DNA from: Macrostomum hystrix
Taxonomy: Eukaryota; Animalia; Platyhelminthes
Length of the DNA stretch: 64,000 nt
NCBI GenBank assembly: GCA_950097015.1
Contig: CATNEN010000001.1
Location: 17,484,001-17,548,000, forward strand
Direction of reading: 5' to 3'
Shown here: in pieces, positions 6,140-64,000 of the stretch
Position numbering within the stretch: the stretch's first letter is position 1
Layout of the letters: each line of letters starts with the position of its first letter
Notes under the pieces: generated by a model
The model's input: only the letters and a program-made list of their open reading frames with translations
Database searches by the model: none
Told to the model about the DNA's origin: nothing
Made by a program: the position numbers and the translations under genes

Positions 6140-6180
6140 GGAGAGATAGAGATAGAGAAATAGAGATAGAGATAGAGACA
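6140..6180. repeat. (GAGATA)n microsatellite
   Basis: Direct reading. Confidence 0.9.
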
Positions 6181-6239
6181 AGTCAATTCAATCATTCACT
6201 CAAAATTAATTATCCTCATCATCACTTCTTCATATTATT

Positions 6240-42030: not shown

Positions 42031-42032
42031 GC

Positions 42033-42722: not shown

Positions 42723-42913
42723 ATGTATTATAATTTGAATACCACCAAGCTAGAAAATCAAATTTTCCATTTTATACTACTAATTAGTAGAGTCATAGAG
42801 CAGATTATGAAATATTACCCCTGGTTGCTTTGTTTAAGGAAAAATGATAGCATGCTTTATTACGTGCTTTGCACAGGCCTAAATTCATAATTAATTTTAC
42901 TTTTCAGCAAACC

Positions 42914-43321
42914 ATGTCTGCGAGAAGGAAGACACAAATTCCGATGGCCGAGTATGATGGACGTATGATGTACGCCGTCCGCAGGGCTATTCATGATGGT
43001 ATAGCCGCCATCGTAGACGGTTGCGGCGGCGTCTGCGAACTAATGTGGCTGGCCTATCAGGCGCTCCCAACGGCCGGGATCGATGAGATCATGCTGCTGT
43101 TGGCCGGTTACCATAACCGGCACGCGGCAATCCAAGCCACACCCGGCATTAACATCGTTGAGATGCAAGAAGGGGCCTATTATGTACTTCAGGGCCCGCC
43201 CACGCAGCAGCGAGTTCGGGACTTGCTGGCAGCTCAGGGCATCGAGCTACCAGAGCCCGCAGGTTGGTGGCAGCAGCTAGGCTCCGAATCAGGCTACGAC
43301 AGCATGTCTGATTCCGAGTGA
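42914..43321 (+). CDS. Array copy 1: 135-aa LOTUS/OST-HTH-like protein
   Basis: ATG follows a ttttcag acceptor; LOTUS-like pattern L..AY..L...LAGY....AI...P.I.IV. Confidence 0.6.
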   Translation: MSARRKTQIPMAEYDGRMMYAVRRAIHDGIAAIVDGCGGVCELMWLAYQALPTAGIDEIMLLLAGYHNRHAAIQATPGINIVEMQEGAYYVLQGPPTQQRVRDLLAAQGIELPEPAGWWQQLGSESGYDSMSDSE

Positions 43322-44005
43322 GCTTCCTGAACACGGCTTCCCTAATTTTAAATCCCTACTTCAAAATCCCTAATTTCTTGCATTTCTTAATTTCTTGAAA
43401 AAAGACTTGCATTTTGTATTTTTTTGCTGTATACTGTATTGCCGATTTGGCTCTTCTTCTGCTTCTTTTCTTGCCCCCGTGTTGTCAATCTCATCATGCT
43501 AAGCACCTCAATATTATGCACACTTTCTTCCTATTGTATATATCACAGAAACAATTACATTTTATCTTTTCTTGTTTATCATGTTGTATATAATCATTAT
43601 GTTGTCAATTATTAAATATTACTATCTATGTTGTCTTCCACACCAATCAAACACCTCTGCGCTGTAACATATTTTAGTTTTTTATCCCTTAATGTGATTG
43701 CGTTTTTTTTTCAAGTAAAATGTGCTTTTAGGGCTTAAGCAAATAGCTCTTTGTTAAGGAAACAACTCTTCATATTCGTTAGATTTTTTAAAGTAAAAGT
43801 TTTAGGGCTAAATTAGGATGTATTATAATTTGAATACTACCAAGCTAGAAAATCAAATTTTCCATTTTATACTACTAATTAGTAGAGTCAGAGCAGATTA
43901 TGAAATATTACCCCTGGTTGCTTTGTTTAAGGAAAAAAGATAGCATGCTTTATTACGTGCTTTGCACAGGCCGAAATTCATAATTAATTTTCTTTTCAGC
44001 AAACC

Positions 44006-44413
44006 ATGTCTGCGAGAAGGAAGACCCAAATTCCGATGGCCGAGTATTCGCGAATAATCGGCAGCGCCGTCCGCAGGGCTATTCATGATGTTATAGCCGC
44101 CATCGTAGACGGTTGCGGCGGCGTCTGCGAACTAATGTGGCTGGCCTATCAGGCGCTCCCAACGGCCGGGATCGATGAGATCATGCTGCTGTTGGCCGGT
44201 TACCATAACCGGCACGCGGCAATCCAAGCCACACCCGGCATTAACATCGTTGAGATGCAAGAAGGGGCCTATTATGTACTTCAGGGCCCGCCCACGCAGC
44301 AGCGAGTTCGGGACTTGCTGGCAGCTCAGGGCATCGAGCTACCAGAGCCCGCAGGTTGGTGGCAGCAGCTAGGCTCCGAATCAGGCTACGACAGCATGTC
44401 TGATTCCGAGTGA
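44006..44413 (+). CDS. Array copy 2: 135-aa LOTUS-like protein
   Basis: Intact ORF, same pattern as copy 1. Confidence 0.6.
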   Translation: MSARRKTQIPMAEYSRIIGSAVRRAIHDVIAAIVDGCGGVCELMWLAYQALPTAGIDEIMLLLAGYHNRHAAIQATPGINIVEMQEGAYYVLQGPPTQQRVRDLLAAQGIELPEPAGWWQQLGSESGYDSMSDSE

Positions 44414-45098
44414 GCTTCCCGAACACGGCTTCCCTAATTTTAAATCCCTACTTCAAAATCCCTAATTTCTTGCATTTCTTAATTTCTTGAAAAAAGACTT
44501 GCATTTTGTATTTTTTTGCTGTATACTGTATTGCCGATTTGGCTCTTCTTCTGCTTCTTTTCTTGCCCCCGTGTTGTCAATCTCATCATGCTAAGCACCT
44601 CAATATTATGCACACTTTCTTCCTATTGTATATATCACAGAAACAATTACATTTTATCTTTTCTTGTTTATCATGTTGTATATAATCATTTTTTTGTCAA
44701 TTATTAAATATTACTATCTATGTTGTCTTCCACACCAATCAAACACCTCTGCGCTGTAACATATTTTAGTTTTTTATCCCTTAATGTGATTGCGTTTTTT
44801 GTTTCAAGAAAAATGTGCTTTTAGGGCTTAAGCAAATAGCTCTTTGTTAAGGAAACAACTCTTCATATTCGTTAGATTTTTTAAAGTAAAAGTTTTAGGG
44901 CTAAATTAGGATGTATTATAATTTGAATACTACCAAGCTAGAAAATCAAATTTTCCATTTTATACTACTAATTAGTAGAGTCAGAGCAGATTATGAAATA
45001 TTACCCCTGGTTGCTTTGTTTAAGGAAAAAAGATAGCATGCTTTATTACGTGCTTTGCACAGGCCGAAATTCATAATTAATTTTCTTTTCAGCAAAAC

Positions 45099-45767
45099 AT
45101 GTCTGCGAGAAGGAAGACCCGGGGGGCAATGGCCTGCGCCTCCACGAGGTGCCCCCCGGAGGACGCAAGTCCTACGAAATGCAGGCCATCAAACGGGCCC
45201 TCCCAAAGCCCAGCAAAGCACAGCACAGCACAGCCCTATCTCCCTGCCCGGAGCCCGCTGCGGTCTTTGAATGCTGTGCTTCCGTGCTGGCCCTGCTTGG
45301 GAAGGCGGGCATCATCTGATGCCCGGTGCCATGGGCCCTGGCCCGCGCACGCCCGAAGAAGAAGAAGAAGAAGGAAGACCCAAATTCCGATGGCCGAGTA
45401 TTCGCGAATAATCGGCAGCGCCGTCCGCAGGGCTATTCATGATGTTATAGCCGCCATCGTAGACGGTTGCGGCGGCGTCTGCGAACTAATGTGGCTGGCC
45501 TATCAGGCGCTCCCAACGGCCGGGATCGATGAGATCATGCTGCTGTTGGCCGGTTACCATAACCGGCACGCGGCAATCCAAGCCACACCCGGCATTAACA
45601 TCGTTGAGATGCAAGAAGGGGCCTATTATGTACTTCAGGGCCCGCCCACGCAGCAGCGAGTTCGGGACTTGCTGGCAGCTCAGGGCATCGAGCTACCAGA
45701 GCCCGCAGGTTGGTGGCAGCAGCTAGGCTCCAAATCAGGCTACGACAGCATGTCTGATTCCGAGTGA
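45099..45767 (+). CDS. Array copy 3 with in-frame 261-bp retroposon insertion
   Basis: 222 aa = 135 + 87. Confidence 0.5.
   Translation: MSARRKTRGAMACASTRCPPEDASPTKCRPSNGPSQSPAKHSTAQPYLPARSPLRSLNAVLPCWPCLGRRASSDARCHGPWPAHARRRRRRRKTQIPMAEYSRIIGSAVRRAIHDVIAAIVDGCGGVCELMWLAYQALPTAGIDEIMLLLAGYHNRHAAIQATPGINIVEMQEGAYYVLQGPPTQQRVRDLLAAQGIELPEPAGWWQQLGSKSGYDSMSDSE
45121..45189 (+). ncRNA. HDV-like self-cleaving ribozyme
   Basis: P1 GGGGGGC/GCCCCCC, P2 AUGGCCUGC/GCAGGCCAU, P3 GCC/GGU, L3 UCCACGA, P1.1 CC/GG, P4 AGGAC-GCAA-GUCCU, J4/2 ACGAAAU with candidate catalytic C45175. Confidence 0.85.
45121..45368 (+). mobile_element. Ribozyme-headed short non-autonomous retroposon, copy 1
   Basis: Absent from units 1, 2 and 5; 13-bp TSD agaaggaagaccc (45108-45120, 45369-45381); (GAA)n tail. 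Confidence 0.9.
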
Positions 45768-46474
45768 GCTTCCCGAACACGGCTTCCCTAATTTTAAATC
45801 CCTACTTCAAAATCCCTAATTTCTTGCATTTCTTAATTTCTTGAAAAAAGACTTGCATTTTGTATTTTTTTGCTGTATACTGTATTGCCGATTTGGCTCT
45901 TCTTCTGCTTCTTTTCTTGCCCCCGTGTTGTCAATCTCATCCTGCTAAGCACCTCCATATTATGCACACTTTCTTCCTATTGTATATATCACAGAAACAA
46001 TTACATTTTATCTTTTCTTGCTTATCATGTTGTATATAATCATTATGTTGTCAATTATTAAATATTACTATCTATGTTGTCTTCCACACCAATCAAACAC
46101 CTCTGCGCTGTAACATATTTTAGTTTTTTATCCCTTAATGTGATTGCGTTTTTTGTTTCAAGTAAAATGTGCTTTTAGGGCTTAAGCAAATAGCTCTTTG
46201 TTAAGGAAACAACTCTTCATATTCGTTAGATTTTTTAAAGTAAAAGTTTTAGGGCTAAATTAGGATGTATTATAATTTGAATACTACCAAGCTAGAAAAT
46301 CAAATTTTCCATTTTATACTACTAATTAGTAGAGTCAGAGCAGATTATGAAATATTACCCCTGGTTGCTTTGTTTAAGGAAAAAAGATAGCATGCTTTAT
46401 TACGTGCTTTGCACAGGCCGAAATTCATAATTAATTTTCTTTTCAGCAAAACATGTCTGCGAGAAGGAAGACCC

Positions 46475-46543
46475 GGGGGGCAATGGCCTGCGCCTCCACG
46501 AGGTGCCCCCCGGAGGACGCAAGTCCTACGAAATGCAGGCCAT
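46475..46543 (+). ncRNA. HDV-like ribozyme, copy 2
   Basis: Same as 45121-45189. Confidence 0.85.
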
Positions 46544-46722
46544 CAAACGGGCCCTCCCAAAGCCCAGCAAAGCACAGCACAGCACAGCCCTATCTCCCTG
46601 CCCGGAGCCCGCTGCGGTCTTTGAATGCTGTGCTTCCGTGCTGGCCCTGCTTGGGAAGGCGGGCATCATCTGATGCCCGGTGCCATGGGCCCTGGCCCGC
46701 GCACGCCCGAAGAAGAAGAAGA
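46475..46722 (+). mobile_element. Ribozyme-headed retroposon, copy 2 (duplicated with its array unit)
   Basis: Same sequence, site and TSD as copy 1. Confidence 0.9.
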
Positions 46723-48289
46723 AGAAGGAAGACCCAAATTCCGATGGCCGAGTATTCGCGAATAATCGGCAGCGCCGTCCGCAGGGCTATTCATGATGTT
46801 ATAGCCGCCATCGTAGACGGTTGCGGCGGCGTCTGCGAACTAATGTGGCTGGCCTATCAGGCGCTCCCAACGGCCGGGATCGATGAGATCATGCTGCTGT
46901 TGGCCGGTTACCATAACCGGCACGCGGCAATCCAAGCACCCGTATATACACGTTAGGCGGTATAGAACACGGCGAAAACCGCCTAAAAGGCGGTCCATAT
47001 CATGCTATATGATATCGTAGCATGATATAGACCGCCTTTTTTAAGCGCATAAAGGCCTTTTATGGCACAAATTTGAACAGCCGTTTCTGCTAATTTTTTT
47101 AGTTCGCTAATGCAAAATATCTATTTTACTACTTTTTAGTAACAATAATTTTAGTGTCACTAGACAAATATTTGAATGGCTTAGTACAAGTGCTAACAGG
47201 TAATATTAATTTATGTAAGCCCAGGGCCTAGCTGTTTATTATTTTTTTATTTCCAAGTCATTGAAACATTAGACAGTCACAGCATTATGGTATATCTTAC
47301 ATATTAGTCCATTAGAACTCGAGAACAATAAGACTAAACTTTAAAAGTATGGCAGGAATAGGATGGCGCTCAGTTTTTAGCTAGGCCTATCGCCGCCTAT
47401 GCCCTAGTTTAATATAGAAATAATATAGTAAAGCTTAAAACCTATGCTAGCTGTATATTGAGCAGGCATAATAATTAGCTATTCTAGTATACTATTGCCT
47501 AGCTGCTAGCTGTAGAATGAGTGCCTTCTGCTTGGCACACTGACAAGATAGCTGTCCTATCATCTATAATTTTACTGTGATTTTACTGTGATATCATTTT
47601 TTGTAATTTTCTTATTTTCTTCCCATTTTTAAAAGCAAGTAGGGCGGCTAGGGCCTAAACAAATTAAAATTTTCAGATTTTTTTTGCAATTAGTTAACTA
47701 ATACGGTGTCTTCTTGAAGTATTTAAAAATATATTTCTATAATTGTTAGTGTGCTGTCCAGATAAGCAGGAAATTATTCCTACAGTAGGGGCCTACCATA
47801 GGAATAAGACAAAAAAATTTATGGCACTGTGGGGATAAGCACTGCCATAGAAAATTCTATACATAAGGGTCCCTAGTATGCTCAGCACACAATCATGGCA
47901 CACTAAGGCCCCTGGGGCACAACAACAATAACAATAGCAAAGCACACCACAGTAGAACAGAGTACAGTTCTAAAAGGTGTACACTATATTTAATCACTGT
48001 TCACATCATGACTATTTTCTTAGAAACAGTACAAAGAAACAGTTGGCAAAGAAGCATAGATGGCATACAGTTGGCCCAAAAATTGACCCCCAAATTTTTT
48101 CCTAGTGAAAACTATGCCATCTTTATTACTATGCTATGGGTCATAGTCAATCATGTACTATAAACTATAGTGATAACCAATATTCAAAATAAAATAGTAC
48201 TGTTGTCTTTTGTATATAGTATATTATTAGTAATTTTATATATTTTATCACTTACATTAGATGCATCTTTCTTATAAACCTATATCATG

Positions 48290-48830
48290 CTTGCCTTCCC
48301 TAAATCCTGCCAGCTATTAAATACCCTGCTGGCCTTTTCTATATCCTGCTAGCATTTTTGACCCTGTTGGCCTTCCACATACCCTGATAATGTTTCCTAT
48401 GCCCTAGCACCTATTCCTATGTCCTATTGGCCTTTCCTATACCCTGCTGGCACAATGAGTGCCTTATACCCTACTACTATTCCTTGATAGTCTTTCCCAC
48501 ACCCTGCTGGCCTTCCCCACACCCTGCTGGACTTCACCACACCTCGTGATGGCCTCTACTTCATTCTGCTGGTCATCCCTGCACCTTAATGGCCATTCCC
48601 ACACCCTGGTGGCCTTTCCCACACCCTGGTGGCCTTCCCCACACCCTGCTGGCCTTTCCCACACCCTGCTTGCCTTCACCACACATTGATGGCCATCCAC
48701 ACACCTTGATGACCTTTCCCAAACCCTGGTGGTCTTCCCCATACCCTGATGGCCTATCCCTGATACAGTTAGCCTTCTCAATCTGGCCATCCACTTACCC
48801 GATGGCCTTTTGCACACCTTGGTGCTCCAG
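48290..48830. repeat. Degenerate 20-bp tandem array (acaccctgctggccttcccc)
   Basis: Reverse complement of the 60380-61990 array. Confidence 0.85.
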
Positions 48831-49136
48831 GCGAATGTATGTATGCCACAACCTGGTCACTCACGGAAGCTTATTTTAATATATATTTCCATTATACTAC
48901 GGGTGTGTCATAAGAAATGTCACTGTGGTTGTTGTGCGGGAAACCAAAGCAATAATCATCCAAATATATTATATTCTGAAAGTAGTATGACTACTATAAG
49001 TACTTATTATAAGCTATTAGATTACTATAACAAGTAACCTAAGGAATTAGTCTAAAGGAAGACTTAGGACTTATCAATATAAGTCTCTAGATTTTTGCGC
49101 TATGTAAAAGCTGGTATTGGTTCTTTAAAATTTCAG

Positions 49137-51396
49137 ATGTCACGTTCTGCTAGAAGGCCTAGTGCTTGGAACGTATTTGAGCGAATTAATTACGATCCTA
49201 GTTTAAACGTTGTTGGTATGCATTTAATTCAGATTTAAATTTATTCAATCCACTCACTCAGATGCCACATTCAACATAAAATAGTTTAAGAAACAGTGTC
49301 ACTTTAGCTCTCAAATTTTTTAATGCTTATGAGATCTTTAAGCTCGAATGGTAATCCTAAATTTCAGATCAAGTCAGCGGCCTTCGCGAGCGCTATGCTT
49401 TGCTTGACAAGCAGGGGAAGGAAGCCTTGCGTGCCCAAGCCGCAGAACGCACAGATACCGCCTCTTTTCAGCGGAAGAAGCTGGTTAGCATGGCTAACAG
49501 CATCGTAAGCAATAAAGTTCGAATGCATGCATTCATGCACGTAGTATACTCCCTTAGGCAATTATGAACTTTGTTGCTAATCTCAATGTATGCCTTCACT
49601 ACAAGGTCGAGTCAGCCGATAATGCAGGCTACCACGTTATCGTGCTGCTGCATTCCAAAGCTGAAGGTGCCACTACCGTGTATGAATCGCAGGAAGTCGT
49701 AGGCTTCTGTGAGCGAGCGAATGTCGCCTCAGTAAGTATCTCGTAAAATCGCAGGTACTTGTTTACTGACAGTATTCAAATAAATTTTTAATCTTAGTTA
49801 TTAGGGTTTTATTATAGTTTTTGTTAAATACTCACAGTTTATCTAAAATCGAACATTTTTTTGGCTTTTCAATCGTGCGTGTCGTCTGCTTCTGCTTCTC
49901 GGCCTAAGACTGCGGCTACCTTGCGCATTGCTGTCAGCAATATGCTGCAGAACAAGTTTAGTAAGTACGGGCTGACAATCGCATGCCTGGGTCCTATTCG
50001 AAGCCACATCATCGTTTTTCCACTCGTATTAATTTCTGGTACTTTAACACGGACTCTCGTCCGTGTTAAAATGATTGCAAGGCTATGCTATGTTTGAGAA
50101 TTACGAATATTACATTAGATAATTGCAACAACTGAAATTCCGTTATATTAAGTTGCAAGTAAATCACGTACAAAATTATAAACATTGCTAGTTTCAATTA
50201 TGCTCATAAACACGCTTTTATTTCTACTTTTAGAAAGAGCAATTGGCAGACGGCAGTTGCAATTTGGAAAAGTTGCACTGTACGGTCGATGGATTCACTG
50301 GCCGGCCGGAGTTCGAAGTGATATTCACCCACAAAAGCTCTCAAAAACAGAGCTTCAAAAAGTCTGGGATGCCAGGGCCCAAATAAAATTTGAAAAAAAG
50401 ATCAGTGAAGTCACTTTCTACAGCGACTCACCACTTCAGCCGGGAACGAGCAGCGATCTACCTGTGCTGCCGGGAACGAGCAGCGACTCACCTGTGCTAC
50501 CGGGAACGAGCAGCGACTCACCTGTGCTACCGGGAACGAACAGCGACTCACCTGTGCTACCGGGAATGAGCAGGGACTCACATGCGTTAGTCCAAGTCGG
50601 TGGGACAGCTGTGCAACCGGTCAAAGTCGGCGGGACAGCTGTGCAACCGGTCAAAGTCGGTGGGACAGCTGTGCAACCGGTCAAAGTCGGCGGGACAGCT
50701 GTGCAACCGGTCAAAGTCGGCAGGACCGCTGTGCAACCGGTCAAAGTCGGCAGGACCGCTGTGCAACCGGTCAAAGTCGGCGGGACAGCTCCAGCTGTGC
50801 AACCGGTCAAAGTCGGCGGGACAGCTCCAGCTGTGCAACCGGTCAAAGTCGGTGGGACAGCTGTGCAACCGGTCAAAGTCGGCGGGACAGCTGTGCAACC
50901 GGTCAAAGTCGGCAGGACCGCTGTGCAACCGGTCAAAGTCGGCAGGACCGCTGTGCAACCGGTCAAAGTCGGCGGGACAGCTGTGCAACCGGTCAAAGTC
51001 GGCAGGACCGCTGTGCAACCGGTCAAAGTCGGCAGGACCGCTGTGCAACCGGTCAAAGTCGGCGGGACAGCTGTGCAACCGGTCAAAGTCGGTGGGACAG
51101 CTGTGCAACCGGTCAAAGTCGGCGGGACAGCTGTGCAACCGGTCAAAGTCGGTGGGACAGCTGTGCAACCGGTCAAAGTCGGTGGGACAGCTGTGCAACC
51201 GGTCAAAGTCGGCGGGACAGCTGTGCAACCGGTCAAAGTCGGCGGGACAGCTGTGCAACCGGTCAAAGTCGGCGGGACAGCTGTGCAACCGGTCAAAGTC
51301 AGCGGGACAGCTGTGCAACCGATCAAAGTCGGCAGGACCGCTGTGCAACCGGTCCAGAGTAGCAGCCAAGAAACAATAGTAGTGGTGGATTATTAA
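49137..51396 (+). CDS. KDZ accessory gene, spliced, HMG-box-like N-terminus and repeat tail
   Basis: Exons 49137-49215, 49368-49504, 49606-49731, ~49864-49960, 50233-51396 join in frame: RRPSAWNVF...LRERYALLDKQGKEALRAQA; exon-4 acceptor is non-canonical. Confidence 0.65.
50422..51355 (+). repeat. Two 30-bp coding minisatellites (SSDSPVLPGT)n and (AVQPVKVGGT)n
   Basis: About 5 and about 25 units. Confidence 0.95.
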
Positions 51397-51909
51397 ATGA
51401 GTAATGAATAAACAGTTTTTTTAAAGCTACGGAAATCGATTTTCTACGATTATGTAACTGTAATCATCCTAAAGACCTAAACCCTCAAAAAGGTTCTTGC
51501 GCAGTGAGACACTGCGCTCTGGTTGTTAGTTGATGCCTTCAGCGTACCATTCTTCACCTGGGTGTTTGCACCACGAAGCGAAATTACCAGCTTCTGGACC
51601 TAGAGAGCTGCCACCTCCAAATTCTGAGGGGACAGCTCTGGCGATGAGCAGTGTGATAAAGCTGTGGGACGGAACGCAGGTGTCTGCCTGCGCATTGTCC
51701 GAAGCTTTGTCATGGGCTAGCGCTGGTGGCATTATCAAGCCTCTTTTCCTTGATATCGACCTTCAGGTGGAGTAGGAGTTTACGGTGACCCCGCTTCTCA
51801 GGCAGCCACTCAATCAACAGCACTCCCAGCGAATCCAAAAGATGGCGCCCACCTGCTTCTTCATCTATGGTGTCGCCTTGTCCTTCAGTGGAGTGGGTTC
51901 AGCTGCGAA

Positions 51910-52485
51910 AATATCGACTTATCCCCTGTCACGACATAATAAACTCCTCTTGGCGGCATTGAATAATGTGAATCAGCTGCTGCGCCCTGTTGCGCTGCAT
52001 CAGTGAAGTAAGGAGTTTCTGCACACATCTAGCAAAAACCTTCGATATTTTCAACTGAGCCGTAGGATGGGCTGTGCAGCCATAACTGATGCCACAGGCC
52101 TCTGCTATCTCAGCAACAGTCACTCAACTGTCCTCGTGGACGACACTGAGTGGTGGAGATCCTAAGTCTCCGACTGCGAGCTTCACCATCGAAGTCACAT
52201 TTGCCTCCATGGAAATGGTGAATCTAAGGGACACAATTTGTCTGTTTGAGGCAAGCCCCATGCGCTGAAAAAAGGCAGTGAAAGAACTTTTTGATTGTCC
52301 CTCATAAGTCTAACCACGTATCTGTTAAGGATAATGATAACCTACGATTCAACGCTCCGTCCGGCATTTAAAATTTTATAAAGTATATCTATAGAACTTT
52401 TAACAGTAAAATTTTCGAATTTCGTAGCAGTGGTAAACAAACAATCAATTGAAAAGTTCAATGCAGCAAAATGATAAACCCCTCG
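51910..52485 (-). mobile_element. Mariner 5' fragment nested in the KDZ element
   Basis: TVAEIAEACGISYG..KVFARCVQKLL (WVPK-like); terminus cccctcg|ta at 52485. Confidence 0.75.
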
Positions 52486-54804
52486 TATAATCGATTCCTT
52501 ATGGAATCTCTTTTAGCTCAAGTGTTTGTTTCTGTTGGGATCACCGTACTTTCAGCCGGTAATTAAATTTCTGTGAATTATTTCACAGGAATCACAGCCC
52601 TTTACTGTTTTACAACCTAGTTGACCTACAGCTGTTTCTTTACTGCATGCAATTCACGCTATTTAGTGTTGCCATTTCAGCTTCCATTGCTTCTTTTGTC
52701 CACCTTCTCAAAGTTTTATACAGATACCTTTTAAAACATACTTTTCTAACATAAATTTGCATTTTATACAGCCATTTATGTTATTTTTCAAAGACTTTTA
52801 ATATAATGAAGTCCCCTCAAATAATAGTAACGTTGATGCTAGTAATTAGTAAAATATATTTAATTACAAAAGTAATATAAAAAATACTTTATCCTTTGCT
52901 ACTGTTATTTTTCATTGGAGCGATTTTGATATCGATCAGCGATTGGACGGTTCACTTGTTCGGACTTGTAATTATTTTTTTTAGTTTTCGAAACACGTGT
53001 TTGGGCTCTCGTTTTTGGAAACTTTAGGACCTCTGCAGGGCCAGCCAGTTGGCAAGCATTTAGGGGCTGCCGTGTTGGTGGCTCTACTGGTTGATCTCAA
53101 AGTCATAGCTGAATAAGTGACCGCTATCGGGTTGTCTATGACCTGGCACACCAATCAGCACCAGGGGCGTAGCCAGGATTTTCGGTTAGGTAGCGCAAAC
53201 GGCGCCAATTGTGTTTATAGGCGCTCAAGTGACGCCAAATCAGCGCCTATACGGCACCAAGTGGGTGCTGAAAAGGCACGAAAATCGGCGCTGAAAGTGC
53301 GCCAGCTGGAAGGAGAGCACCAAGCCTGCGTGAAGGGGGCGCTGCATACCTTTGCGGCAGTAGCTAATGTAAGAATCTGGCCCTCCACGCGTTACTATGA
53401 CTACTTAAATTCACTACAGTTTTTCATCATCATACGAACACGAAATGGAGAAATACGCATGTACATCTATGTATACAGCTTCAATATATTTGAGATGGAC
53501 AAGAAATCCTTCTCTGCGTTTTGCTAGCGGTGCAGCGGATTCCAGCGAATGGTCTGGACGTTGCGAACTCATCCAGAAACCTGTTCAGCCCACCTGATTT
53601 AGGGACGACCCCGCGGTGGGCCAGCCACCACACGCCTGCAGCAGTTACTCGTACATTAGGTTAGCACCTCTGTTGCTTAGTAGCTCCTGCCATAACGTCC
53701 CCAGCTAGTGTACAGGAGCATCGATCCGGATCCCTCGCCCCTGCTGTCTTCGCGGCAGCTCTCGCCTGGCGCCCTCGCAGCTTCCGCTACACACCCACCG
53801 ACAACTCTGGCCATTATCCTTTATAAAGCGGGTATAATTTTCTTTTAATTTCTCAATTTAACTCAACTCTATTTCTACCTAAGAGACAAATCAATCGGAC
53901 TCGGCAGTCGTAGTTTTCTTCCATATGGGTTCTCTTGAATGATTCGCTATAGAACGGGCCGGTAAAGACGGCTCGATCACAGTTCCGCTATCCTTACTTG
54001 TAAACTACAACACAGACTGTGCCTCTGCTCCAAAAATGGATGGCTTTTTGCGCGCTTACTTGCTTAGTATTCAGTTGGCCTCAGCTAATTGGGCTAATAA
54101 ACAAAAATAATTTATAGAAACGTAAAAACTGACACGCGTCAAACATATATGATTTAGTCGTACTAAAAAAGTCACACAACGTGCAAGTTACAAAAAGTGG
54201 CAAATCACATATGAATAAGCAATAACGCAGACAGGTGGGGTTCGCACTGCTAGCGCACTGACTAGTGGACGCTTAGGGTTAGAATGGCCATTGCAGGTTG
54301 AAAGAGAAAGAGTTGAAAGTTTTTTTAGGCAAGCGTTTGGGCAAATGGACTGTGCTGTCTATTATACGAGTTATATTATAAAAGCATGGCGGCGTCTTTA
54401 CAGGGTGCTGACTTTTATATAAGAACGAGCGGAATTCCTCCTGCGAAAGAAGTTAGGGGATCAAACTCCCATCGCCCGAATTTCATCTATCAAACTCTAG
54501 CAATTCGAAGAGAACTCTGAACTTTAAATTGGGTGAACTCAGAATGAGGACAGGACTTATTTAAGGACAGGGAGGTTGCTCTACATTGTAAGTACATTTG
54601 TCTCTCCGCCAATGCCGAGGTGCGAATTTTCAAAAAGTTAAATTTGAGCAGCCTGCTTGCAGATTTCGTGAATGGAATTTGGCACCCAGCCAACTCTGCC
54701 CCAGCCCAATGTAATTTACGCAATTCGATCAGTATTGAAAAAATCTGACCCCTCAATAGCAGCTTGACTCGCGGCACCCTCTGCACCCATACACTGAGGC
54801 CTGA

Positions 54805-55043
54805 GAGCCGGTTATTTTTGTTTCGCTCGATCTTCACTTTCAACATCCCGTTCCCGTTCCTTCCTATTGGCTCGTGACTGCCATAGACGAACTCGTTTTT
54901 TCCACTAGCATTATAGTCCACGATATTACTTTCAGAGGGGGACGAAAACGAGCTCGTCTATGGCAGTCACGAGCCAATAGGAAGGAACGGCCGGAAACGG
55001 GATGTTAAAAGTGAAGATCGAGCGAAACAAAAAGAACCGGCTC
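54805..55043. repeat. ~95-bp inverted repeat with ~45-bp spacer
   Basis: Arms 54805-54900 and 54945-55043. Confidence 0.9.
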
Positions 55044-56454
55044 AGATTGGCACTCCATTCTATTCTTTCCTCCATAGGCCTGAGGTTAGAATGTGAGTAC
55101 GGCCTCCTCCGCCCCGTCAATTTTGAGTACAGACCCCCGCTGGAGAAAATACACTAAATAGATCGTCGACAATTTCTGATGAAACCATTTGATTCTTCGT
55201 CTGGGAAGATGTGTGCTACTGAATACTACAGACACTTTCTTCTGCTTCTCTGAGGATCTTTGAATTCGAAATTTCTGAATTGCGTAAAATATCCTATATA
55301 GCCAAGTCGAAAAATTCCCTTTTACTACTAAAATTTATACGCTTAGTACTGCATGCAGTATACCCTCGTAAATGCAGGTAGTCAAAAACCTAATTAGCAC
55401 CAGTTCCATGCTAGTCCTCGACAGCAGTGTGAGCAGCAACATCTACACTGGCTATGGGCGTAGTACTCGGCGCGAATGATGTGAATATGTTCGATCGTAG
55501 CTCGTGTTTTGACAGTATCATTTGGGTTATTGAGCTATAGTAATTTAAAAGTATACTGAACGTAGAACGGTTTACTGTACAAGTGGCATGAGGGTAAATC
55601 TCTTTACCATTGTAAGAACTAGCAATTTAATACATGTATGAAATTATTAAGCTAGTCGCTCTTTGTCCTTCTCTCTCTATAAAGCTTTGAAATTCTCGAT
55701 AGCTGGTTTGACGAAGCAGTAAAAGCTACGTTTGTTGGTTTTTTTTTGGAGACTTGTACTGTTGTGGCGAAAAACGAATAAATAAATAACAATTGACACG
55801 TCGATTCCACATTTAAACACAGCTTGCACATAATAACTCGATTGGACCTGAGAGAAAGGTCAGACTTAGTGATCTTCGGTTTTAATAAAAATAATTGTCT
55901 CAGTAGTGATTAATGCAGGATGAGCAATTAGCAAAGTGCTTTAGAAATAGGAAAAAGCAGTACATCAAATCATTCGGCTTTATTTATTAACTGGGCACTG
56001 TGCCAGAAACCTATGCGCGGAATTCTCACGTAAAATCGATGAGGATTGGGGGGAAGCTGGGGAAGGGATGTTGAGGAAGAGCCAGAAAAAAATGAAACAT
56101 TCCACAGCTCAAATTATGATGGTAAAACGGGATACACTGTGGGGAGACGGGTCTGAAGGCGCATGGGGAAGCAGATGGGGAGTATGGGGAGATGGGATAG
56201 GAAGACGGCGCTCTCTCATTGGCCGAGAGACAGATGTCTTTGTGGCGGGATGTGCTGACGGCTTTCCGGAGATTATAGAGGTTGGGTCGTGCATAGCTTG
56301 GGAAAAATTAATGCTGAAATTCGTGGCTGAAAAGTTTTGTTTCAATTGTATTAACAATAAACAAAACAGCAAGCTGCTTCTCAGGAGAAATTTTGACAGC
56401 AGAAAATTGACAGAAAATTTGACAGCAGAAAATTCGCAAGCTTTGATGGAATCG

Positions 56455-59400
56455 TTAAGAAAACTCGGAGTCATCCTCACTGGCAGACAATAAAGCTTGC
56501 GAATTTTCCGATTCACTGTCATGAGAATCGCACGACTCAGAATCCGGTTGTGTCTCCGCCATTGCTCCAAACGGGAAAGCGGCTTCATGAGCATGGCGTA
56601 AGCGCAATATACCACTTAGCCGAAGAGATAATACCGCAGTGAGTGGGCTGTTGCTATCTCGGGCGGCTTGCAACTCTGAGGTCACGGTTAGAACGGCAGC
56701 AGAAAGAAAATTATAAACACGCTTTGCCTCTGAAGTCACCAGGCGCGACTCTTCCGAGCATCGAAGGTACAGATCGCGAAGTTTTACGGCTTGCACCTTG
56801 TGAGTTAGGACCTCGACACCGACAGTGCCTCCATTTATAAGCTGCTCGAAGCCAGAGGCGTCTGTCGAAATGAAGTCATTCCAATCAAGTAGGTCCCTTG
56901 GATTTTTGCTGTTAAACCTTGAACAGACTATCTTTGTCTTGCGGAGCAGCTTGTCTGTGGCTACTCGAAGTAGCCTGTTCATACGCTGACCACGCTCTGT
57001 TGCCGCATGTTCGAGTAGATACTGCCGCTCGCATGCAATGCCAAATAGTTTTCGGATAGTCTCAGACTTGGGCGAGGATGACTCACGCGCAGATAGCACA
57101 TTGATCAGCTCTTGCCTCCAATCGGCTGTCTCTTGAAGGAATTCTTCAAGAGTCACTAATGGAGATACAGCGGATATTTAATGTAATATATATATTATTA
57201 ATATTTAATGATGGGGTTGTAGCCTGGTGGTTAGAGCGTCGGACTCACAACTTGAAGGTCGACAATTTGAGTCCTTTAGCAAGACACTTAACTCTGCTTT
57301 GCTTCAGTTCACCCAGCTGTCAAAATGGGGAATGAGTCAGGACTCACTGTGCACATTGTGATGCGCTTGAAATGCAGCAAAGCCAGCTTCGAATTGTTGC
57401 ACTGCCTTCTTTTCGACTGTTCGGCGGTGACTCAGCCAGGTCGCTGAAAAAGAAAAACATGCCGCATTTTTCACGCGAAATTTTAGCAACTATATTTGTT
57501 ACGAGAACAATAAGGCCCAATAAGATATCAATTCAATATTCTATGGAGAAATATATAAATGCAAATAATTAATCAGCGGATATAACTTCCATACTTATAT
57601 TTATAATGCAGTGAAAATTCATGCTGTCGACAAGGTAATTGAGAAATTCGCGCCGATTGTCATGCGACATCTCTTTAACCTGAGGGCTGAAGCGTCGAAG
57701 ATCTGCCCAGATTCTCTCTACGCTTTCACCATCCGTCAAGCCAACGGAGGTAATAGAACGAATTCCATACGTCAGTTGACAGCGCAGAACGTGCCCGTAG
57801 GTATGAAACGCCGGTATCGCGAATGACAACCGAGTGTCGTTGAACCGACCAGCCAGTTTGCACCCAATATCGTATGACACGACAATGGGAACCATTGCAG
57901 GAACGTCCCCCAAAATTTTGGCAACCATTGCTGTGGCGTAGTTGAGCCTGGTGATTAAATTGATCAGAGTTTGAACTTAAAAAATTAAGCATACACTCCT
58001 TCATTCTCCGCACTTTTCTTGTTTACTCCGCCCAGTTTCTCTCGCTCTCGTTATCTCTGCTCGCTATTATTCTGTCAGTCTCCTTTCTAATTCGTAGACA
58101 GCTCACACCAACTGCTAGGAATTCCTTATTATCCAACCCACTAACTCTCTCTAGAGTTAGCAAACAAAATAAGTTACAAAGTAAAACAATAACCACTCTG
58201 CCACTACCCATTTCAAAAATGGGACTAATTAGTCCTGCAACAAAGTTCTTTTACAATCAACTAGTTACCGTTCGCCTGCAGTAGTAACGTCGGACAGGTA
58301 GCGTATAGCAGAGTGTCTGCAGGAACCAGCAAAGGCCCCAAACACGTCTAGCTTGCCCCGGTCTGCAGCAGTCGTTAGAGTTTGACCTCTTCCACCCGCT
58401 CTCCAGTTCGCACAGTGTCCTGCAGAGGGATTGTGATCATCAGTAAGGTCAACGTCAACGAAAAAGCCTGTTGGAGTTGGTAAAGCAGCTCTGCCTGCAG
58501 TTCGGCGATGGCGGAGACCGAAGCAGGCGTCCATCATCAGGAAAATTGGACTGCTCTTTTCGGCATCAGAGTCCGAATCAACCTACAGAAGTTACATGAC
58601 ATTTTAATAAAAGCCAATCAGTGTATTGCAATGAGAGAGCATGGTTATACTCGTACATATATGAAAGGAAGATCTTTTACCACATAGCATGCTGGACATG
58701 ATGGCTTTCTTCCCCAACGAAAGCTCTGCAGCACACGGCGGAAAGACCGGAACGCCCCAGTTACGTTGAGCGCTCTAAATAGATCGATCTAAAAATTTAA
58801 TGTATGAGAATGGCTGATTGTTAAGACACACCTATTACAAAATAATAGCAAGTTGGGCCAGTCTGATGAAAACTTGCTGATGTGGATGACTGCGCCCACA
58901 TAGACTTCTTGGAGCGCCTAATAGCACTGCAAATCGAAGACAACGATGCTGTGCAGTTGCAATTCAGCGAATCAATTAGAAGAAGCAGTTCAATAGACAC
59001 GGCAGTCAGTTCCCGAGAGCCCTCTGGTCGAGGCTGCAAGGGCCAAAATCCATGTGCCAGAAGAGCTGCGTGGTACGTAGTACATGTACACATCTCAAGA
59101 TTTGCTTTTAGTTCGCTTCCTGAAATGAGGTAGTGAGTACTGATACTGATTGAGTAAAGTCTTGCTAGAATATCAGTGTCCCCTAAATATGACGTTTGTT
59201 TTTGTAGCAATCGGCGTCATATTGCAGCTCAGAACATTCACGTGACTTGTTATTTTAAGAAGCTAAGTAACAAAGTAAGCTACTGCAAACAGAAAAAATG
59301 CAGAATTCAGCCGAGAATCACCATCTTCAGTCACAATAGTGACCGGAAGTACGCTGTAGAGAAGACAGCTGCACAGCCGAGAAAGCCGCACTTGTGATGA

Positions 59401-60117
59401 AACGGCCTCAAAGAAGTCACCCTGACGAGCGGGTAAAAAAGAGCACTGTCGCTAGAAATCATATATAAGAAAATACCCAATTCATGTAAAAATGCATTCA
59501 ATACAATATATAATATATAAATCATAATACAATATAAACAACATAATTATAAACCAGATCTGCATAGTATCGAACTTACATTCCAGCGTTGAACAGCATG
59601 GGGCGGCATATGGGCATGGCGGGCATCTAAGCAAGTGGAGCAGACCGATAGTAAGTGACACTTGAGGCACCGGAATATTTCAGTCTCGCAACCGCAAAAG
59701 ACACATGGGCGCTTGTTGTAGTGACCCGCTAAACCGACTGTCAAGACCCCTGACTGAAATAACTCATTCCAAGCGTCGTTTTCTTCGCTGCAAAAGGTCT
59801 TAAAACGGCTTGGCTTTGCGGACTTCGATTGAGCACGATCGTCATGAGTCTCGACTTCTTCAGCAACGATAGGGTCGTCTTGGATGTCCAACCATTCTTC
59901 TTCTTCTGGGTCGTTGTTGTATACAGGCTGGGTGTCACTGCATAGAAAGAAAGAGTAGTCAAGAAAAGTTGTGAATCATTTGAATTTTGAACCATTATAC
60001 TCACGGGATGCAACACTTCGATGTCAACGGAGTTCGAACGATACGTGCTCGCTTACGACACGCAGGAGTACAATACTTTACTGACGTCTTGGCAATAGAC
60101 TGCTTTCGTCTTCCCAT
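56455..60117 (-). CDS. Multi-exon CxC3-like + KDZ transposase
   Basis: CVFC..RCLKC..C..C...H...P.H, CTC..LLAHGFWP, CPAC, MDACFGL, LDVFGAFAGSCRH, GER, YDIGC, IPAFHTYGH..CQ, GLTDGESVERIW; about 9 exons. Confidence 0.92.
57212..57340 (+). mobile_element. tRNA-derived CORE-type SINE in a KDZ transposase intron
   Basis: A-box gtagcctggtggttagagc, decayed B-box, then gcaagacacttaac..cttcagttcacccagctgtcaaaatggg. Confidence 0.75.
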
Positions 60118-60379
60118 GTAGCTGAAATCAGATAAGCAAATAGTGTCGGATAATCGGATAAATATTTGATGATTACTAATTTTCAAAGACAATAAAAGAA
60201 TCAAAACAAAACGTATCCATAAAGCAGGTCGAAGCGAAGATTGCTTTAACAAAATAAAAGATAAGCGTCCAAGACTCACCCGGGTGTAGTCTGTTGCCTC
60301 GAGAAACGGGTATGTAAAGAAGAGAATCAGAAGGCAGGAAGGCACCAAAGTGAAAGAAAAGGCAGTAGAATTTGGAAAA

Positions 60380-61990
60380 GGCTAGCGTTGTGAGGGGAAG
60401 GCCAGCGTAGTGTGGGAAAGGCCAGCGTAGTGTGGGGAAGGCCATTAGGATGTGGCAGCAGGGTGTGGGGAAGGCCATCTGGGTGTGGGAAAGGCCAAAG
60501 AGGTGTGGGAAAGGCCACAGAGGTGTGGGAAAGGCCACAGAGGTGTGGGAAAGGCCACAGAGGTGTGGGAAAGGCCAGCGTAGTATGGGGAAGGCCAGCG
60601 CAGTGTGGGAAGGCCAGCGTAGTATGGGAAAGGCCATTAGGATGTGGCAGCAGGGTGTGGGGAAGGCCACCTGGGTGTGGGAAAGGCCATCAATATGGGG
60701 AAGCCCACATAGGAATGAATAAGGTCAGTAGGGTGTTGTGAAGGCCAAAAATGTGTGGGAAAGGCCACAGAGGTGTGGGAAAGGCCAGCGTAGTGTGGCG
60801 AAGGCCAGCGTTGGGTAAGGAAGGCCAGCGTAGTGTGGGGAAGGGCAGCGTAGTGTGGCGAAGGCCAGCGTTGGGTAAGGAAGGCCAGCGTAATGTGGGG
60901 AAGGCCATTAGTATGTGGCAGCAGGGTGTGGGAAGGCCACCTGGGTGTGGGAAAGGCCATCAATATGGGGAAGCCCACATAGGAATGAAGAAGGCCAGTA
61001 GGGTGTTGTGAAAGCCAAAAATGTGTTGGAAAGGCCACCTGGGTATGGGAAATGCCACAGAGGTGTGGGAAAGGCCATCAAGGTATGGGGAAGGCCACAT
61101 AGGAGTGGAGAAAGCCACATAGGAGTTAAAAGGCTAGTAGGGTGTTGTAAAGGCCATTAAGGTGTGGGGAAGGCCATAAAAGTGTAGGAAAATCCATCCA
61201 GGTGGGGAAGGACACAAAGGAGTAGAGAAGGCCAATAGGGCATGGTGAAGGCCAGTAGGGTATGGTGAAGGCCAGTAAGGTATGGTGAAGGCCAGTAGGG
61301 TATGGTGAAGGCCAGTAGGGTATGGTGAAGGCCAGTAGGGTATGTTGAAGGCCAGTAGGGTATGGTAAAGGCCAGTAGGGTATGGTGAAGGCCAGTAGGG
61401 TATGGTGAAGGCCAGTAGGGTATGGTGAAGGCCAGTAGGGTATGGTGAAGGCCAGTAGGGTATGAAGGCCAGTAGGGTATGTTGAAGGCCAGTAGGGTAT
61501 AGTGAAGGCTAGTAGGGTATGGTGAAGGCCAGTAGGGTATGGTGAAGGCCAGTAGGGTATGGTGAAGGCCAGTAAGGTATGGTGAAGGCCAGTAGGGTAT
61601 GGTGAAGGCCAGTAGGGTATGGTGAAGGCCAGTAGGGTATGGTGAAGGCCAGTAGGGTATGGTGAAGGCCAGTAGGGTATGGTGAAGGCCAGTAGGGTAT
61701 GGTGAAGGCCAGTAGGGTATGGTGAAGGCCAGTAGGGTATGGTGAAGGCCAGTAGGGTATGGTGAAGGCCAGTAGGGTATGGTGAAGGCCAGTAGGGTAT
61801 GGTGAAGGCCAGTAGGGTATGGTGAAGGCCAGTAGGGTATGGTGAAGGCCAGTAGGGTATGGTGAAGGCCAGTAGGGTATGGTGAAGGCCAGTAGGGTAT
61901 GGTGAATGCCAGTAGGGTATGGTGAAGGCCAGTAGGGTATGGTGAAGGCCAGTAGGGTATGGGGAAGGCCATCAAAGTGTGGCAAAAGCC
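60380..61990. repeat. 20-bp tandem array (ggtgaaggccagtagggtat)n
   Basis: Homogeneous at 61240-61970, degenerate at 60380-61240. Confidence 0.97.
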
Positions 61991-63619
61991 ACAAAGGAGT
62001 GGAGTGGTAACAAGTAAAGCCTCTGAAGCAACAATTGGCTTTAACCTACAACACAACATAGTAGTAGAATAGCTAGAACCTAATTATAAACTTAGGCCTA
62101 TAATTACAAACAATACACATATTTATGCCAGCAACTAGTTATACAATTTAGCTAGCTACAGGCCTACAGCTAGCAGCTAGGCAATAGTATACTAGAATAG
62201 CTAATTATTATGCCTGCTCAATATACAGCTAGCATAGGTTTTAAGCTTTACTATATTATTTCTATATTAAACTAGGGCATAGGCGGCGATAGGCCTAGCT
62301 AAAAACTGAGCGCCATCCTATTCCTGCCATACTTTTAAAGTTTAGTCTTACTGTTCTCGAGTTCTAATGGACTAATATGTAAGATATACCATAATGCTGT
62401 GACTGTCTAATGTTTCAATGACTTGGAAATAAAAAAATAATAAACAGCTAGGCCCTGGGCTTACATAAATTAATATTACCTGTTAGCACTTGTACTAAGC
62501 CATTCAAATATTTGTCTAGTGACACTAAAATTATTGTTACTAAAAAGTAGTAAAATAGATATTTTGCATTAGCGAACTAAAAAAATTAGCAGAAACGGCT
62601 GTTCAAATTTGTGCCATAAAAGGCCTTTATGCGCTTAAAAAAGGCGGTCTATATCATGCTACGATATCATATAGCATGATATGGACCGCCTTTTAGGCGG
62701 TTTTCGCCGTGTTCTATACCGCCTAACGTGTATATACGGGTGATCCAAGCCACACCCGGCATTAACATCGTTGAGATGCAAGAAGGGGCCTATTATGTAC
62801 TTCAGGGCCCGCCCACGCAGCAGCGAGTTCGGGACTTGCTGGCAGCTCAGGGCATCGAGCTACCAGAGCCCGCAGGTTGGTGGCAGCAGCTAGGCTCCAA
62901 ATCAGGCTACGACAGCATGTCTGATTCCGAGTGAGCTTCCCGAACACGGCTTCCCTAATTTTAAATCCCTACTTCAAAATCCCTAATTTCTTGCATTTCT
63001 TAATTTCTTGAAAAAAGACTTGCATTTTGTATTTTTTTGCTGTATACTGTATTGCCGATTTGGCTCTTCTTCTGCTTCTTTTCTTGCCCCCGTGTTGTCA
63101 ATCTCATCCTGCTAAGCACCTCCATATTATGCACACTTTCTTCCTATTGTATATATCACAGAAACAATTACATTTTATCTTTTCTTGCTTATCATGTTGT
63201 ATATAATCATTATGTTGTCAATTATTAAATATTACTATCTATGTTGTCTTCCACACCAATCAAACACCTCTGCGCTGTAACATATTTTAGTTTTTTATCC
63301 CTTAATGTGATTGCGTTTTTTTTTTCAAGTAAAATGTGCTTTTAGGGCTTAAGCAAATAGCTCTTTGTTAAGGAAACAACTCTTCGTATTCGTTAGATTT
63401 TTTAAAGTAAAAGTTTTAGGGCTAAATTAGGATGTATTATAATTTGAATACTACCAAGCTAGAAAATCAAATTTTCCATTTTATACTACTAATTAGTAGA
63501 GTCAGAGCAGATTATGAAATATTACCCCTGGTTGCTTTGTTTAAGGAAAAAAGATAGCATGCTTTATTACGTGCTTTGCACAGGCCGAAATTCATAATTA
63601 ATTTTCTTTTCAGCAAACC

Positions 63620-64000
63620 ATGTCTGCGAGAAGGAAGACCCAAATTCCGATGGCCGAGTATTCGCGAATAATCGGCAGCGCCGTCCGCAGGGCTATTCAT
63701 GATGTTATAGCCGCCATCGTAGACGGTTGCGGCGGCGTCTGCGAACTAATGTGGCTGGCCTATCAGGCGCTCCCAACGGCCGGGATCGATGAGATCATGC
63801 TGCTGTTGGCCGGTTACCATAACCGGCACGCGGCAATCCAAGCCACACCCGGCATTAACATCGTTGAGATGCAAGAAGGGGCCTATTATGTACTTCAGGG
63901 CCCGCCCACGCAGCAGCGAGTTCGGGACTTGCTGGCAGCTCAGGGCATCGAGCTACCAGAGCCCGCAGGTTGGTGGCAGCAGCTAGGCTCCAAATCAGGC
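63620..64000 (+). CDS. Array copy 5 (no insertion), runs off the window
   Basis: Same ORF as copy 2, with the KSGY variant. Confidence 0.6.
   Translation, partial: MSARRKTQIPMAEYSRIIGSAVRRAIHDVIAAIVDGCGGVCELMWLAYQALPTAGIDEIMLLLAGYHNRHAAIQATPGINIVEMQEGAYYVLQGPPTQQRVRDLLAAQGIELPEPAGWWQQLGSKSG

Follow-up and report, generated by a model that had tools for sequence, protein, structure and literature searches.

The window analysed here is a 64,000-bp stretch of the genome of the flatworm Macrostomum hystrix (C1:17484001–17548000 of an assembly of 220 Mb in 42 contigs, to which the genome searches below refer). From position 42723 onwards it contains a head-to-tail array of ~1.1-kb units, interrupted by a large transposon. 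The units carry a small open reading frame (ORF) for a single-domain protein that is predicted to fold as a winged helix, with LOTUS (OST-HTH) as the best-fitting family. Two points are new: diverged paralogs of this gene are cargo of a ~14.7-kb element, and the array appears to be an escaped copy of one of the two family types (type A) with a new 5′ end. The features of the array and its left border are as follows.

42058–42722, plus strand: truncated Helitron fragment forming the left flank, outside the array; at least 40 copies in the genome
42723–43321, plus strand: edge unit of the array (unit 1), made up of 191 bp of spacer and a coding sequence (CDS) at 42914–43321 for 135 amino acids (aa); matches unit positions 497–1092 at 97% (blastn)
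43322–44005, plus strand: spacer, 31% GC, with a 63-bp element at 43417–43479 and a single acceptor TTTTCAG at 43993–43999
44006–44413, plus strand: CDS of unit 2, 58% GC; LOTUS-like ORF of 135 aa used as the reference
44414–45098, plus strand: spacer 2, 99% identical to the spacer at 43322–44005
45099–45767, plus strand: unit 3 CDS, 222 aa, with an in-frame 261-bp insert at ~45121–45381
45768–46452, plus strand: spacer 3 (blastn)
46453–46937, plus strand: 5′ part of the unit 4 CDS, also with the 261-bp insert (~46475–46735)
46938–62742, no strand assigned: inserted transposon of 15,805 bp inside unit 4, foreign to the array
62743–62934, plus strand: 3′ part of the unit 4 CDS (blastn, ORF list)
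62935–63619, plus strand: spacer 4 (blastn)
63620–64000, plus strand: CDS of unit 5, truncated where the window ends (search of the assembly)

A direct-repeat search and blastn with one unit gave the start of the array and a period of 1092 bp, or 1354 bp when the 261-bp insert is present. Repeat families in the window are spaced 1092, 1354 and 1354 bp and ~16.9–17.2 kb apart according to the direct-repeat search, a long period that was missed by Tandem Repeats Finder. The blastn copies of one unit lie at 42723–43321, 43322–44413, 44414–45120 plus 45369–45767, 45768–46474 plus 46723–46937, 62743–62934 and 62935–64000. In the ORF list, the frames at 42914 and 44006 are 135 aa long and the one at 45099 has 222 aa; the frame at 46453 is truncated, and 62728–62934 supplies the C-terminal 68 codons of the split unit 4. 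A six-frame search of the assembly brought the total to 17 units, with the right end of the array at C1:17562383, 14.4 kb beyond the window; five units, including two intact 135-aa ORFs, are located inside the window and 12 outside. As the units are 97–100% identical across ~1.1 kb, the repetition is far beyond chance. Unit 1 is the most diverged one, differing at codons 16–20 and 29 and being 95% identical to unit 2. Growth of the array by unequal exchange is fitted by the more diverged edge units.

An initial annotation of the window had described 42723–64000 as an array of at least five near-identical ~1.09-kb units with a 135-aa ORF in each. The five units are there, and the peptide motifs it quoted occur as written in the window ORFs. 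However, only units 1 and 2 have the intact 135-aa frame, because unit 3 encodes 222 aa, unit 4 is split and unit 5 is cut, and about three quarters of the span (46938–62742) is inserted transposon plus satellites. Conservation of the ORF in other copies, on which the proposal had been made to depend, holds across the array: 16 of the 17 units have intact ORFs and one has a split ORF, followed by a 10-codon stub at the right edge.

Outside the array, the genome harbours about a dozen diverged copies of the gene. They belong to two types, A with ~126–135 aa and an acidic tail (...W.W...ESGY.S..DSE) and B with 117–118 aa, which are clearly homologous to each other (E 1e-15 to 1e-20). The array CDS has 58% GC and 65% GC at third codon positions, compared with 31% GC in the spacer. 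By the Nei–Gojobori method (NG86), dN/dS amounts to 0.16–0.46 across all deep paralog pairs; the B-type genes of loci L015 and L016, with 35.5 synonymous versus 25.5 nonsynonymous changes (pS 0.38, pN 0.10), give a value of 0.20. Therefore, the family evolved as a protein, under purifying selection. By DNA, the nearest A-type relative of the array is found 230 kb away on the same contig. The spacer of the array unit occurs only in the array and in one copy on contig C14, which rules out that the unit itself is a dispersed transposable element (TE). At this C14 copy, the array unit's only close relative (gene at 8066–8470, minus strand), ~6 kb of (TTAGGG)n (~1814–7983, near the contig start) begin 83 nt past the stop codon. 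This looks like telomere repeats added at a break in the 3′ region of the unit, or like an interstitial telomeric array.

Relatives in other organisms were sought at several levels. A word-index protein search with the 135-aa ORF gave no match, and Pfam matched neither the array ORF nor other family members. A profile hidden Markov model (HMM) of the family, run against 1.84 billion representative proteins, yielded four matches and no true relative among them: three are repetitive or low-complexity proteins, and the fourth (P0004) matches a short C-terminal motif only. Since the sequence searches were negative, the family appears to be lineage-restricted or unannotated elsewhere. P0004 is a bacterial-looking secreted repeat protein in which two stretches (one at ~580–614) read RERVRELMQSQNLKIDDGTFDRWWQEL, resembling RVRDLLAAQGIELPEPAGWWQQL of the family, i.e. 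the C-terminal helix and WW motif (profile E 2.8e-4). The match is due either to chance or to a short module that the two have in common.

AlphaFold2 models were computed on an alignment of nine paralogs. Mean pLDDT (predicted local distance difference test) values are 81 for an A-type and 80 for a B-type target, with cores above 90 (in A, most of residues 11–110). The predicted elements of the A model are H11–36, E40–42, H43–53, H58–63, H69–75, E79–83, E89–93 and H98–107 (H, helix; E, strand), followed by a disordered tail. The resulting topology, α1-β1-α2-α3-α4-β2-β3-α5, is also obtained with the B-type target. That the array ORF folds as a winged helix, the prediction on which the initial annotation had staked its proposal, can on these models be regarded as secure. 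Foldseek against the PDB gave nothing at E < 1e-3. For the A model, the LOTUS domain of TDRD5 heads the list (E 0.019, TMt 0.73) and the LOTUS domains of Oskar and TDRD7 follow lower; for the B model, TDRD7 (TMt 0.71) and TDRD5 are high-ranked. A second, Foldseek-independent structural aligner was run against 48,161 representatives; on its scale Z values of ~8 are middling and differences below 1 are ties. For the A model, TDRD5 (3s93_B) ranks first (Z 7.8, root-mean-square deviation (r.m.s.d.) 2.3, 79 of 81 residues), and further scores are 7.7 for the extended winged helix (eWH) of TFIIIC τ138, 6.8 for MARF1 LOTUS (third), 6.6 for TDRD7 (fifth), 5.7 for Tejas and 5.2 for Oskar. The B model gives TDRD5 8.6 (20% identity), TDRD7 8.1, τ138 8.1, MARF1 7.8, Tejas 7.4 and Oskar 7.0, so that LOTUS chains occupy ranks 1, 2, 4, 7 and 12, with the lowest r.m.s.d. 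and near-full target coverage. A search of the viral fold library BFVD revealed nothing convincing. Judged by the models, LOTUS is the best-fitting winged-helix family, not cleanly separated from τ138 eWH, cullin WHB and STK19.

The sequence link to LOTUS runs through the B-type paralogs. In BLASTP, GYPSFIAAIQSTPGISVVRMEDGRV of a B-type protein pairs with GYPNLTAYLRSIPEIVRLSNENGEV of P0005, an OST-HTH protein of Macrostomum lignano. The alignment has 40% identity across 25 aa (E 0.002 in a single comparison) and covers exactly the GY-helix-hairpin segment; the array ORF gave nothing significant. P0005 is 78% identical to the canonical M. hystrix LOTUS locus L029, and in Smith–Waterman comparisons with 400 shuffles B-types reach z 4–5 against both, while z averages 0.84 when all 42 pairs are taken together. 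An HMM built from seven flatworm LOTUS domains assigns B-types 10.9 and 6.4 bits, above all 500 of their own shuffles (p ≤ 0.002); for A-types p is only 0.05–0.6. Among 667 real open frames from all loci examined, the B-types come right behind the genuine LOTUS frames, with a background of at most 2.6 bits. MAFFT places the family collinear with LOTUS domains from α1 to the C-terminal helix, RVRELLAA standing against HIEQLIARQ. Because B-types resemble LOTUS and A and B are unambiguous homologues, LOTUS homology of the array ORF is likely.

Several results weigh against this assignment. The HMMER comparison with OST-HTH that the initial annotation had suggested left the family undetected: Pfam OST-HTH (PF12872) matches neither the array ORF nor any of nine family members, even at E ≤ 10, and a PF12872 scan of the genome gave 14 canonical matches, none in the LOTUS-like family. 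The profile–profile comparison did not bear the assignment out either, since hhalign of the family against six LOTUS domains of the same genome returned a probability of 1.7% (E 0.03), albeit in the structurally expected register. Searched with a sequence HMM, the PDB yielded nothing beyond a designed protein and enoyl-CoA hydratases (E ≥ 0.04). On the structural side, the top Z values of 7.8–8.6 are middling and tie with the non-LOTUS τ138 eWH, and the A and B models share one alignment of nine sequences and are not independent. The LOTUS/OST-HTH pattern read by eye is thus supported at the fold level and weakly at the sequence level. A second OST-HTH gene, detectable by Pfam, was seen as a 223-aa frame in several identical copies (L033/L034; C38:21014414, C10:2852020, C1:25888749). 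Since these lie on different contigs, more than one mobile element here may carry LOTUS genes.

LOTUS domains are modules in large germ-granule scaffold proteins, where they recruit and activate Vasa (PMC5458760). Extended LOTUS (eLOTUS) domains are defined by a C-terminal extension forming α5, which together with α2 is needed to bind the C-terminal RecA domain of Vasa and has the highest surface conservation (PMC5458760). A helix right after the wing is also predicted in the family, at residues 98–107 in A (RVRDLLAAQ) and 79–87 in B, in a block of pLDDT ~84–94. Its spacing to β3 equals that of flatworm eLOTUS genes, and with a mean pairwise identity of 0.73 it belongs to the best-conserved segments (GPPT linker 0.80, α4 0.60), so that the models support the earlier reading of RVRDLLAAQ as an eLOTUS-type C-terminal helix; V101 and L104 of the 135-aa protein are conserved hydrophobic positions in it. 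In contrast, α2, the second Vasa-contacting helix, is poorly conserved (0.26), which counts against a Vasa-binding role. The array protein is acidic (9 K+R vs 15 D+E) and its recognition helix is not basic, a charge that fits a protein-binding rather than a DNA-binding winged helix.

Compared with the eLOTUS domains of TDRD5/Tejas, TDRD7/Tapas and Oskar, which bind and activate Vasa (PMC5458760) and give the best structural matches, the family shares the winged-helix core, the GY-x-helix-β hairpin motif in register and the conserved helix directly after the wing. In the canonical M. hystrix loci L025 and L029, the wing is followed by the eLOTUS-type sequence ...SHIE[SQ]LI..QR, whereas the α5 of the family reads RVR[DE]LLAA and not SHIExLIxxQR, and its α2 is not conserved. 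As in the flatworm TDRD-like gene L029/P0005, the domain is located at the extreme N terminus. Unlike eLOTUS proteins, the family lacks Tudor and OSK domains as well as a long disordered scaffold, and it lies below Pfam detection; the architectures of TDRD5, TDRD7, Oskar and MARF1, in which LOTUS is joined to Tudor, OSK or NYN/RRM, are not found. The ORFs of 117–135 aa are bounded by stops at either end and contain no other Pfam domain, as expected from the description of a stand-alone, Tudor-less protein. The genes also differ from eLOTUS genes in being transposon-borne and tandemly amplified. MARF1 mLOTUS (5yad, Z 6.8 and 7.8) and bacterial OST-HTH have the same core fold, but they are devoid of the C-terminal extension (PMC5458760) and paired with NYN or RRM, whereas in the family the C-terminal helix is predicted and conserved. 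The τ138 eWH (5aim) ties with the top match and also covers the C-terminal helix (Z 7.7–8.1, 82–92 residues); it differs in its higher r.m.s.d. (3.4–4.1 Å), in being a domain of a large DNA-bound transcription factor and in the absence of a visible sequence signal.

The surroundings of the paralogs revealed how the family is carried. Near the paralogs at C1:19.13 Mb lies an ORF for a P-loop ATPase with at least eight copies of 95–100% identity on six contigs. The copies at C1:19.13 Mb, on C10 and on C2 have a common sharp left terminus, TGTCA[AC]TATACTTTCC..., next to unrelated flanks, and the copy at C1:1.02 Mb spans the same termini. Because of these sharp common termini with unrelated flanks, the sequence is a ~14.7-kb multi-copy mobile element:

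C1:19129172–19143900 (L015/L023/L045): young element copy; others at C1:1.01 Mb, C10:3.21 Mb and C2:7.07 Mb

The likeness between C1:1.02 Mb and C1:19.13 Mb, for which a segmental duplication had been considered, is now explained by two independent insertions of one element. In addition to the ATPase, the element has three large ORFs without a Pfam match, one with an H-x-x-R ... Y pattern; PHROGs and Pfam gave weak P-loop ATPase matches only. Its termini bear ~40-bp tandem repeats. Together, the A and B genes make up a cassette of 2734 bp that lies 1.9 kb in from the left end, and the element exists with and without it. The cassette is present in the C1:19.13 Mb copy (A and B) and in the C1:1.02 Mb copy (B only) and absent from the C10 and C2 copies, which show identical breakpoints with a 3-bp GCT repeat. 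It is also collinear with the left arm of the element in old, decayed copies on C29 (83–90%), C3 (79%) and C32 (73%), and lies beside another element segment at C1:17.80 Mb (86%). Since the cassette is situated inside the termini and collinear in old copies, the family is long-standing cargo of the ~14.7-kb element. No element sequence was found around the window array or its C14 relative; it is the paralogs that are cargo, not the array. Whether the gene is selfish or host-encoded, which the initial annotation had left as alternatives, is partly answered: older family members are cargo of a mobile element.

The array genes have a different 5′ end. Dispersed genes share a TATAAATAC-containing, TATA-type segment ~120 nt before the ATG, whereas the array type instead reads ...TTTTCAG CAAACC ATG and has ten new codons before the ancestral MAEY start. 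In M. lignano, the acceptor motif in trans-splicing of the spliced leader (SL) reads [T/C]TNCAG, the only stated requirement is an acceptor without an upstream cis donor, and genes that follow each other on one strand at distances below 1 kb count as operons (PMC8629364). We adopted the motif and the spacing criterion from that species. A scan of 44414–45098 found in the 684-bp spacer exactly one [TC]TNCAG acceptor, 6 nt before the ATG, no GT[AG]AG donor and one ATTAAA, at 44703, 290 nt past the stop. Because of the acceptor, the spacing and the donor-free spacer, read-through transcription resolved by trans-splicing is plausible, judging from the sequence. For expression of the array as such, we consider the odds to be even. 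A 63-bp pyrimidine-rich element with two UGUAU cores is located ~100 nt past the stop in every array unit. It recurs beside paralogs (L015:9943–10000; L016:8163–8242 and 9008–9070; L019:8372–8434; L022:6164–6226) and nowhere else in the genome than next to family members. Next to A and B genes its conservation is 90–95%, although the encoded proteins share only ~40% identity. Folding of the element predicted no structure (z 0.05).

On the basis of the repeat anatomy, the family-wide coding constraint, the predicted fold and the linkage to the element, which we regard as established, the best explanation as a whole is that of a real protein-coding gene from a lineage-restricted, element-borne family, of which the array is an escaped A-type copy (probability about 0.6). 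Each family protein would consist of one divergent LOTUS-like winged helix with a conserved C-terminal helix and a short tail, and the A+B cassette in the element would be its long-standing home. An A-type copy would have left the element, lost the TATA-type upstream region and gained ten codons behind the SL-type acceptor. Unequal exchange would then have amplified the escaped copy to the 17-unit head-to-tail array. Later, a 261-bp retroposon would have hit the array and been co-amplified to four units, and the 15.8-kb KDZ transposon would have entered one unit. The array would be transcribed through, and SL trans-splicing would yield monocistronic messenger RNAs.

A simpler view is that the array is a non-functional by-product, i.e. 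a transposon-derived gene fragment amplified like a satellite in TE-rich DNA, the ORFs being intact only since the array is young and homogenised. Some of our own data speak for it and against a selected gene. The array ORF and its nearest copy, on C14 (90% aa identity), differ with an ω of 0.77, and the edge and an inner unit with an ω of 1.12 based on few changes. Two transposons, the retroposon and the KDZ element, have been tolerated within the array coding sequence, the ancestral TATA-type upstream region has been lost, and the surroundings are packed with TEs. On the other hand, the CDS core is sixfold less variable within the array than the spacer (π 0.0018 vs 0.0112): the CDS has two variable sites, one synonymous and one E125K at 9:8, the spacer 30 variable and 15 gapped columns. 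Even this difference could partly reflect mutable or error-prone, mis-called AT-rich spacers. Furthermore, each of the 16 unsplit ORFs is open, the frame was kept by the 261-bp insert, the new 5′ end supplies an ATG with a well-placed SL-type acceptor, and the family overall is under purifying selection. We consider the by-product scenario a serious alternative, if an unlikely one.

Two other explanations concern the nature of the protein and its origin. The gene may encode a generic winged-helix accessory factor of the element, which binds element DNA, RNA or the element's own enzymes, so that the likeness to LOTUS is a matter of a common fold only. The ties in Z with τ138 eWH, cullin WHB, STK19 and Nse subunits point in this direction, as do the failure of Pfam and hhalign to establish LOTUS membership and the position of the gene next to the putative recombinase- and ATPase-type ORFs of the element. 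Yet the leading ranks, lowest r.m.s.d. and near-full coverage of LOTUS chains in the B-model search argue for a closer relation, the LOTUS HMM puts the B-types above all non-LOTUS frames, and a DNA-binding version is at odds with the acidic charge and the recognition helix; on balance, we find a generic factor rather doubtful. Far less credible is an ordinary host gene family with coincidental TE proximity. Purifying selection and the conserved TATA-like upstream region of the dispersed members would suit it, but the cassette lies within the common termini of independent insertions with unrelated flanks and keeps its collinearity with the arm of the element across copies whose identity ranges from 73% to 98%, and no relative was found in the annotated M. 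lignano proteome or elsewhere among the 1.84 billion representatives. This explanation is largely refuted.

In the favoured explanation, the acidic single-domain product of the gene would act as a protein-binding adaptor and not as a DNA binder. Its conserved α4/α5 face would be used as the eLOTUS domains of TDRD5, TDRD7 and Oskar are used on the C-terminal RecA domain of Vasa, and, devoid of a scaffold domain, the protein would compete with or mimic host eLOTUS proteins. Binding of Vasa or a DEAD-box protein is a tentative proposal, and we would sooner bet against it. Still more speculative, and in our estimate improbable, is the joint scenario that the element took its eLOTUS module, a Vasa-binding one, from a TDRD-type gene of the host and that selection maintains it there as a free-standing mimic, the array being a dosage-amplified escapee. 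Such a mimic would titrate Vasa from the PIWI-interacting RNA (piRNA) machinery or bring element products into germ or neoblast granules, and the array would represent either a suppressor super-dose or a decoy, domesticated by the host, that sequesters the partner of the element.

The array resembles ampliconic germline gene arrays such as Stellate/Su(Ste) of Drosophila in its ~1-kb near-identical units with a small ORF each, in the repeat-rich, transposon-invaded DNA and in a copy number that suggests a dosage conflict. The protein family is a different one, and the resemblance does not extend to evidence of sex linkage, antisense piRNA production or drive. Transposon-encoded mimics of piRNA-pathway proteins have been proposed speculatively in connection with the Rhino–Deadlock case, with no example named, to account for how fast the piRNA pathway evolves (PMC6367137). 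The models suggest a likeness to these hypothesised mimics in that the element carries a stand-alone copy of the domain by which host TDRD proteins recruit Vasa; they differ in that mimicry would here be deduced from fold and linkage only. Our literature searches found no transposon-borne or stand-alone animal LOTUS protein described. A free-standing, fast-diverging, transposon-carried and tandemly amplified LOTUS protein would be a natural candidate for the mimics, which have long been postulated and never identified, and, if true, the capture scenario would provide the first concrete case in which a transposon encodes a mimic of a protein from the piRNA pathway. The idea is directly testable because the host genus is experimentally tractable: for M. 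lignano, RNA interference, transgenesis, macvasa and a Macpiwi1 piRNA pathway that operates in both the germline and neoblasts have been described (PMC4604429, PMC1828727, PMC7053086). Also on a sober reading, the locus documents the escape of a cargo gene, the gain of a trans-splice acceptor and operon-like expansion of an array.

The insertions and flanks of the array agree with the TE-rich surroundings noted in the initial annotation, as a Helitron, a KDZ transposon and other TEs are present. The 261-bp insert is located after codon 7, at codon 8. It is GC-rich, has a (GAA)n tail and a 10–13-bp target duplication, and leaves the frame open. Four of the 17 units carry it, two in the window and two beyond, and it is retroposon-like and was later co-amplified within the array. 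An Rfam scan of 42000–47500 at E ≤ 0.1 gave a sub-threshold microRNA-like match only, with no ribozyme like that of hepatitis delta virus in the insert. The 15,805-bp element splits unit 4 at codon ~75 and is bordered on both sides by the 8-bp duplication ATCCAAGC. It has ~33-bp inverted ends (CACCCGTATATACACGTTAGGCGG...), a KDZ transposase fragment at 57569–57928 on the minus strand (PF18758, E 2e-23) and long internal satellites of 20 and 30 bp (48492–48760, 50421–51354, 60378–61971).

At the left flank, the Helitron breaks off in its helicase-proximal ORF, and array sequence follows from 42723 with an ATG microhomology at the junction; an intact Helitron copy (L039) runs on as '...EITEMRLPMLTAEQ...GTGKTF', a PIF1-type helicase motif. 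The right flank of the array is unrelated low-copy sequence plus satellite. Because it is unrelated to the left Helitron, the array is not an insertion with two matching flanks, and an insertion of the array into a Helitron, found only at the left flank, was ruled out. Further Helitron remnants are located at 33078–36448, where ORFs on the minus strand that contain an OTU-like protease motif, together with an RPA-like ORF, may represent another Helitron.

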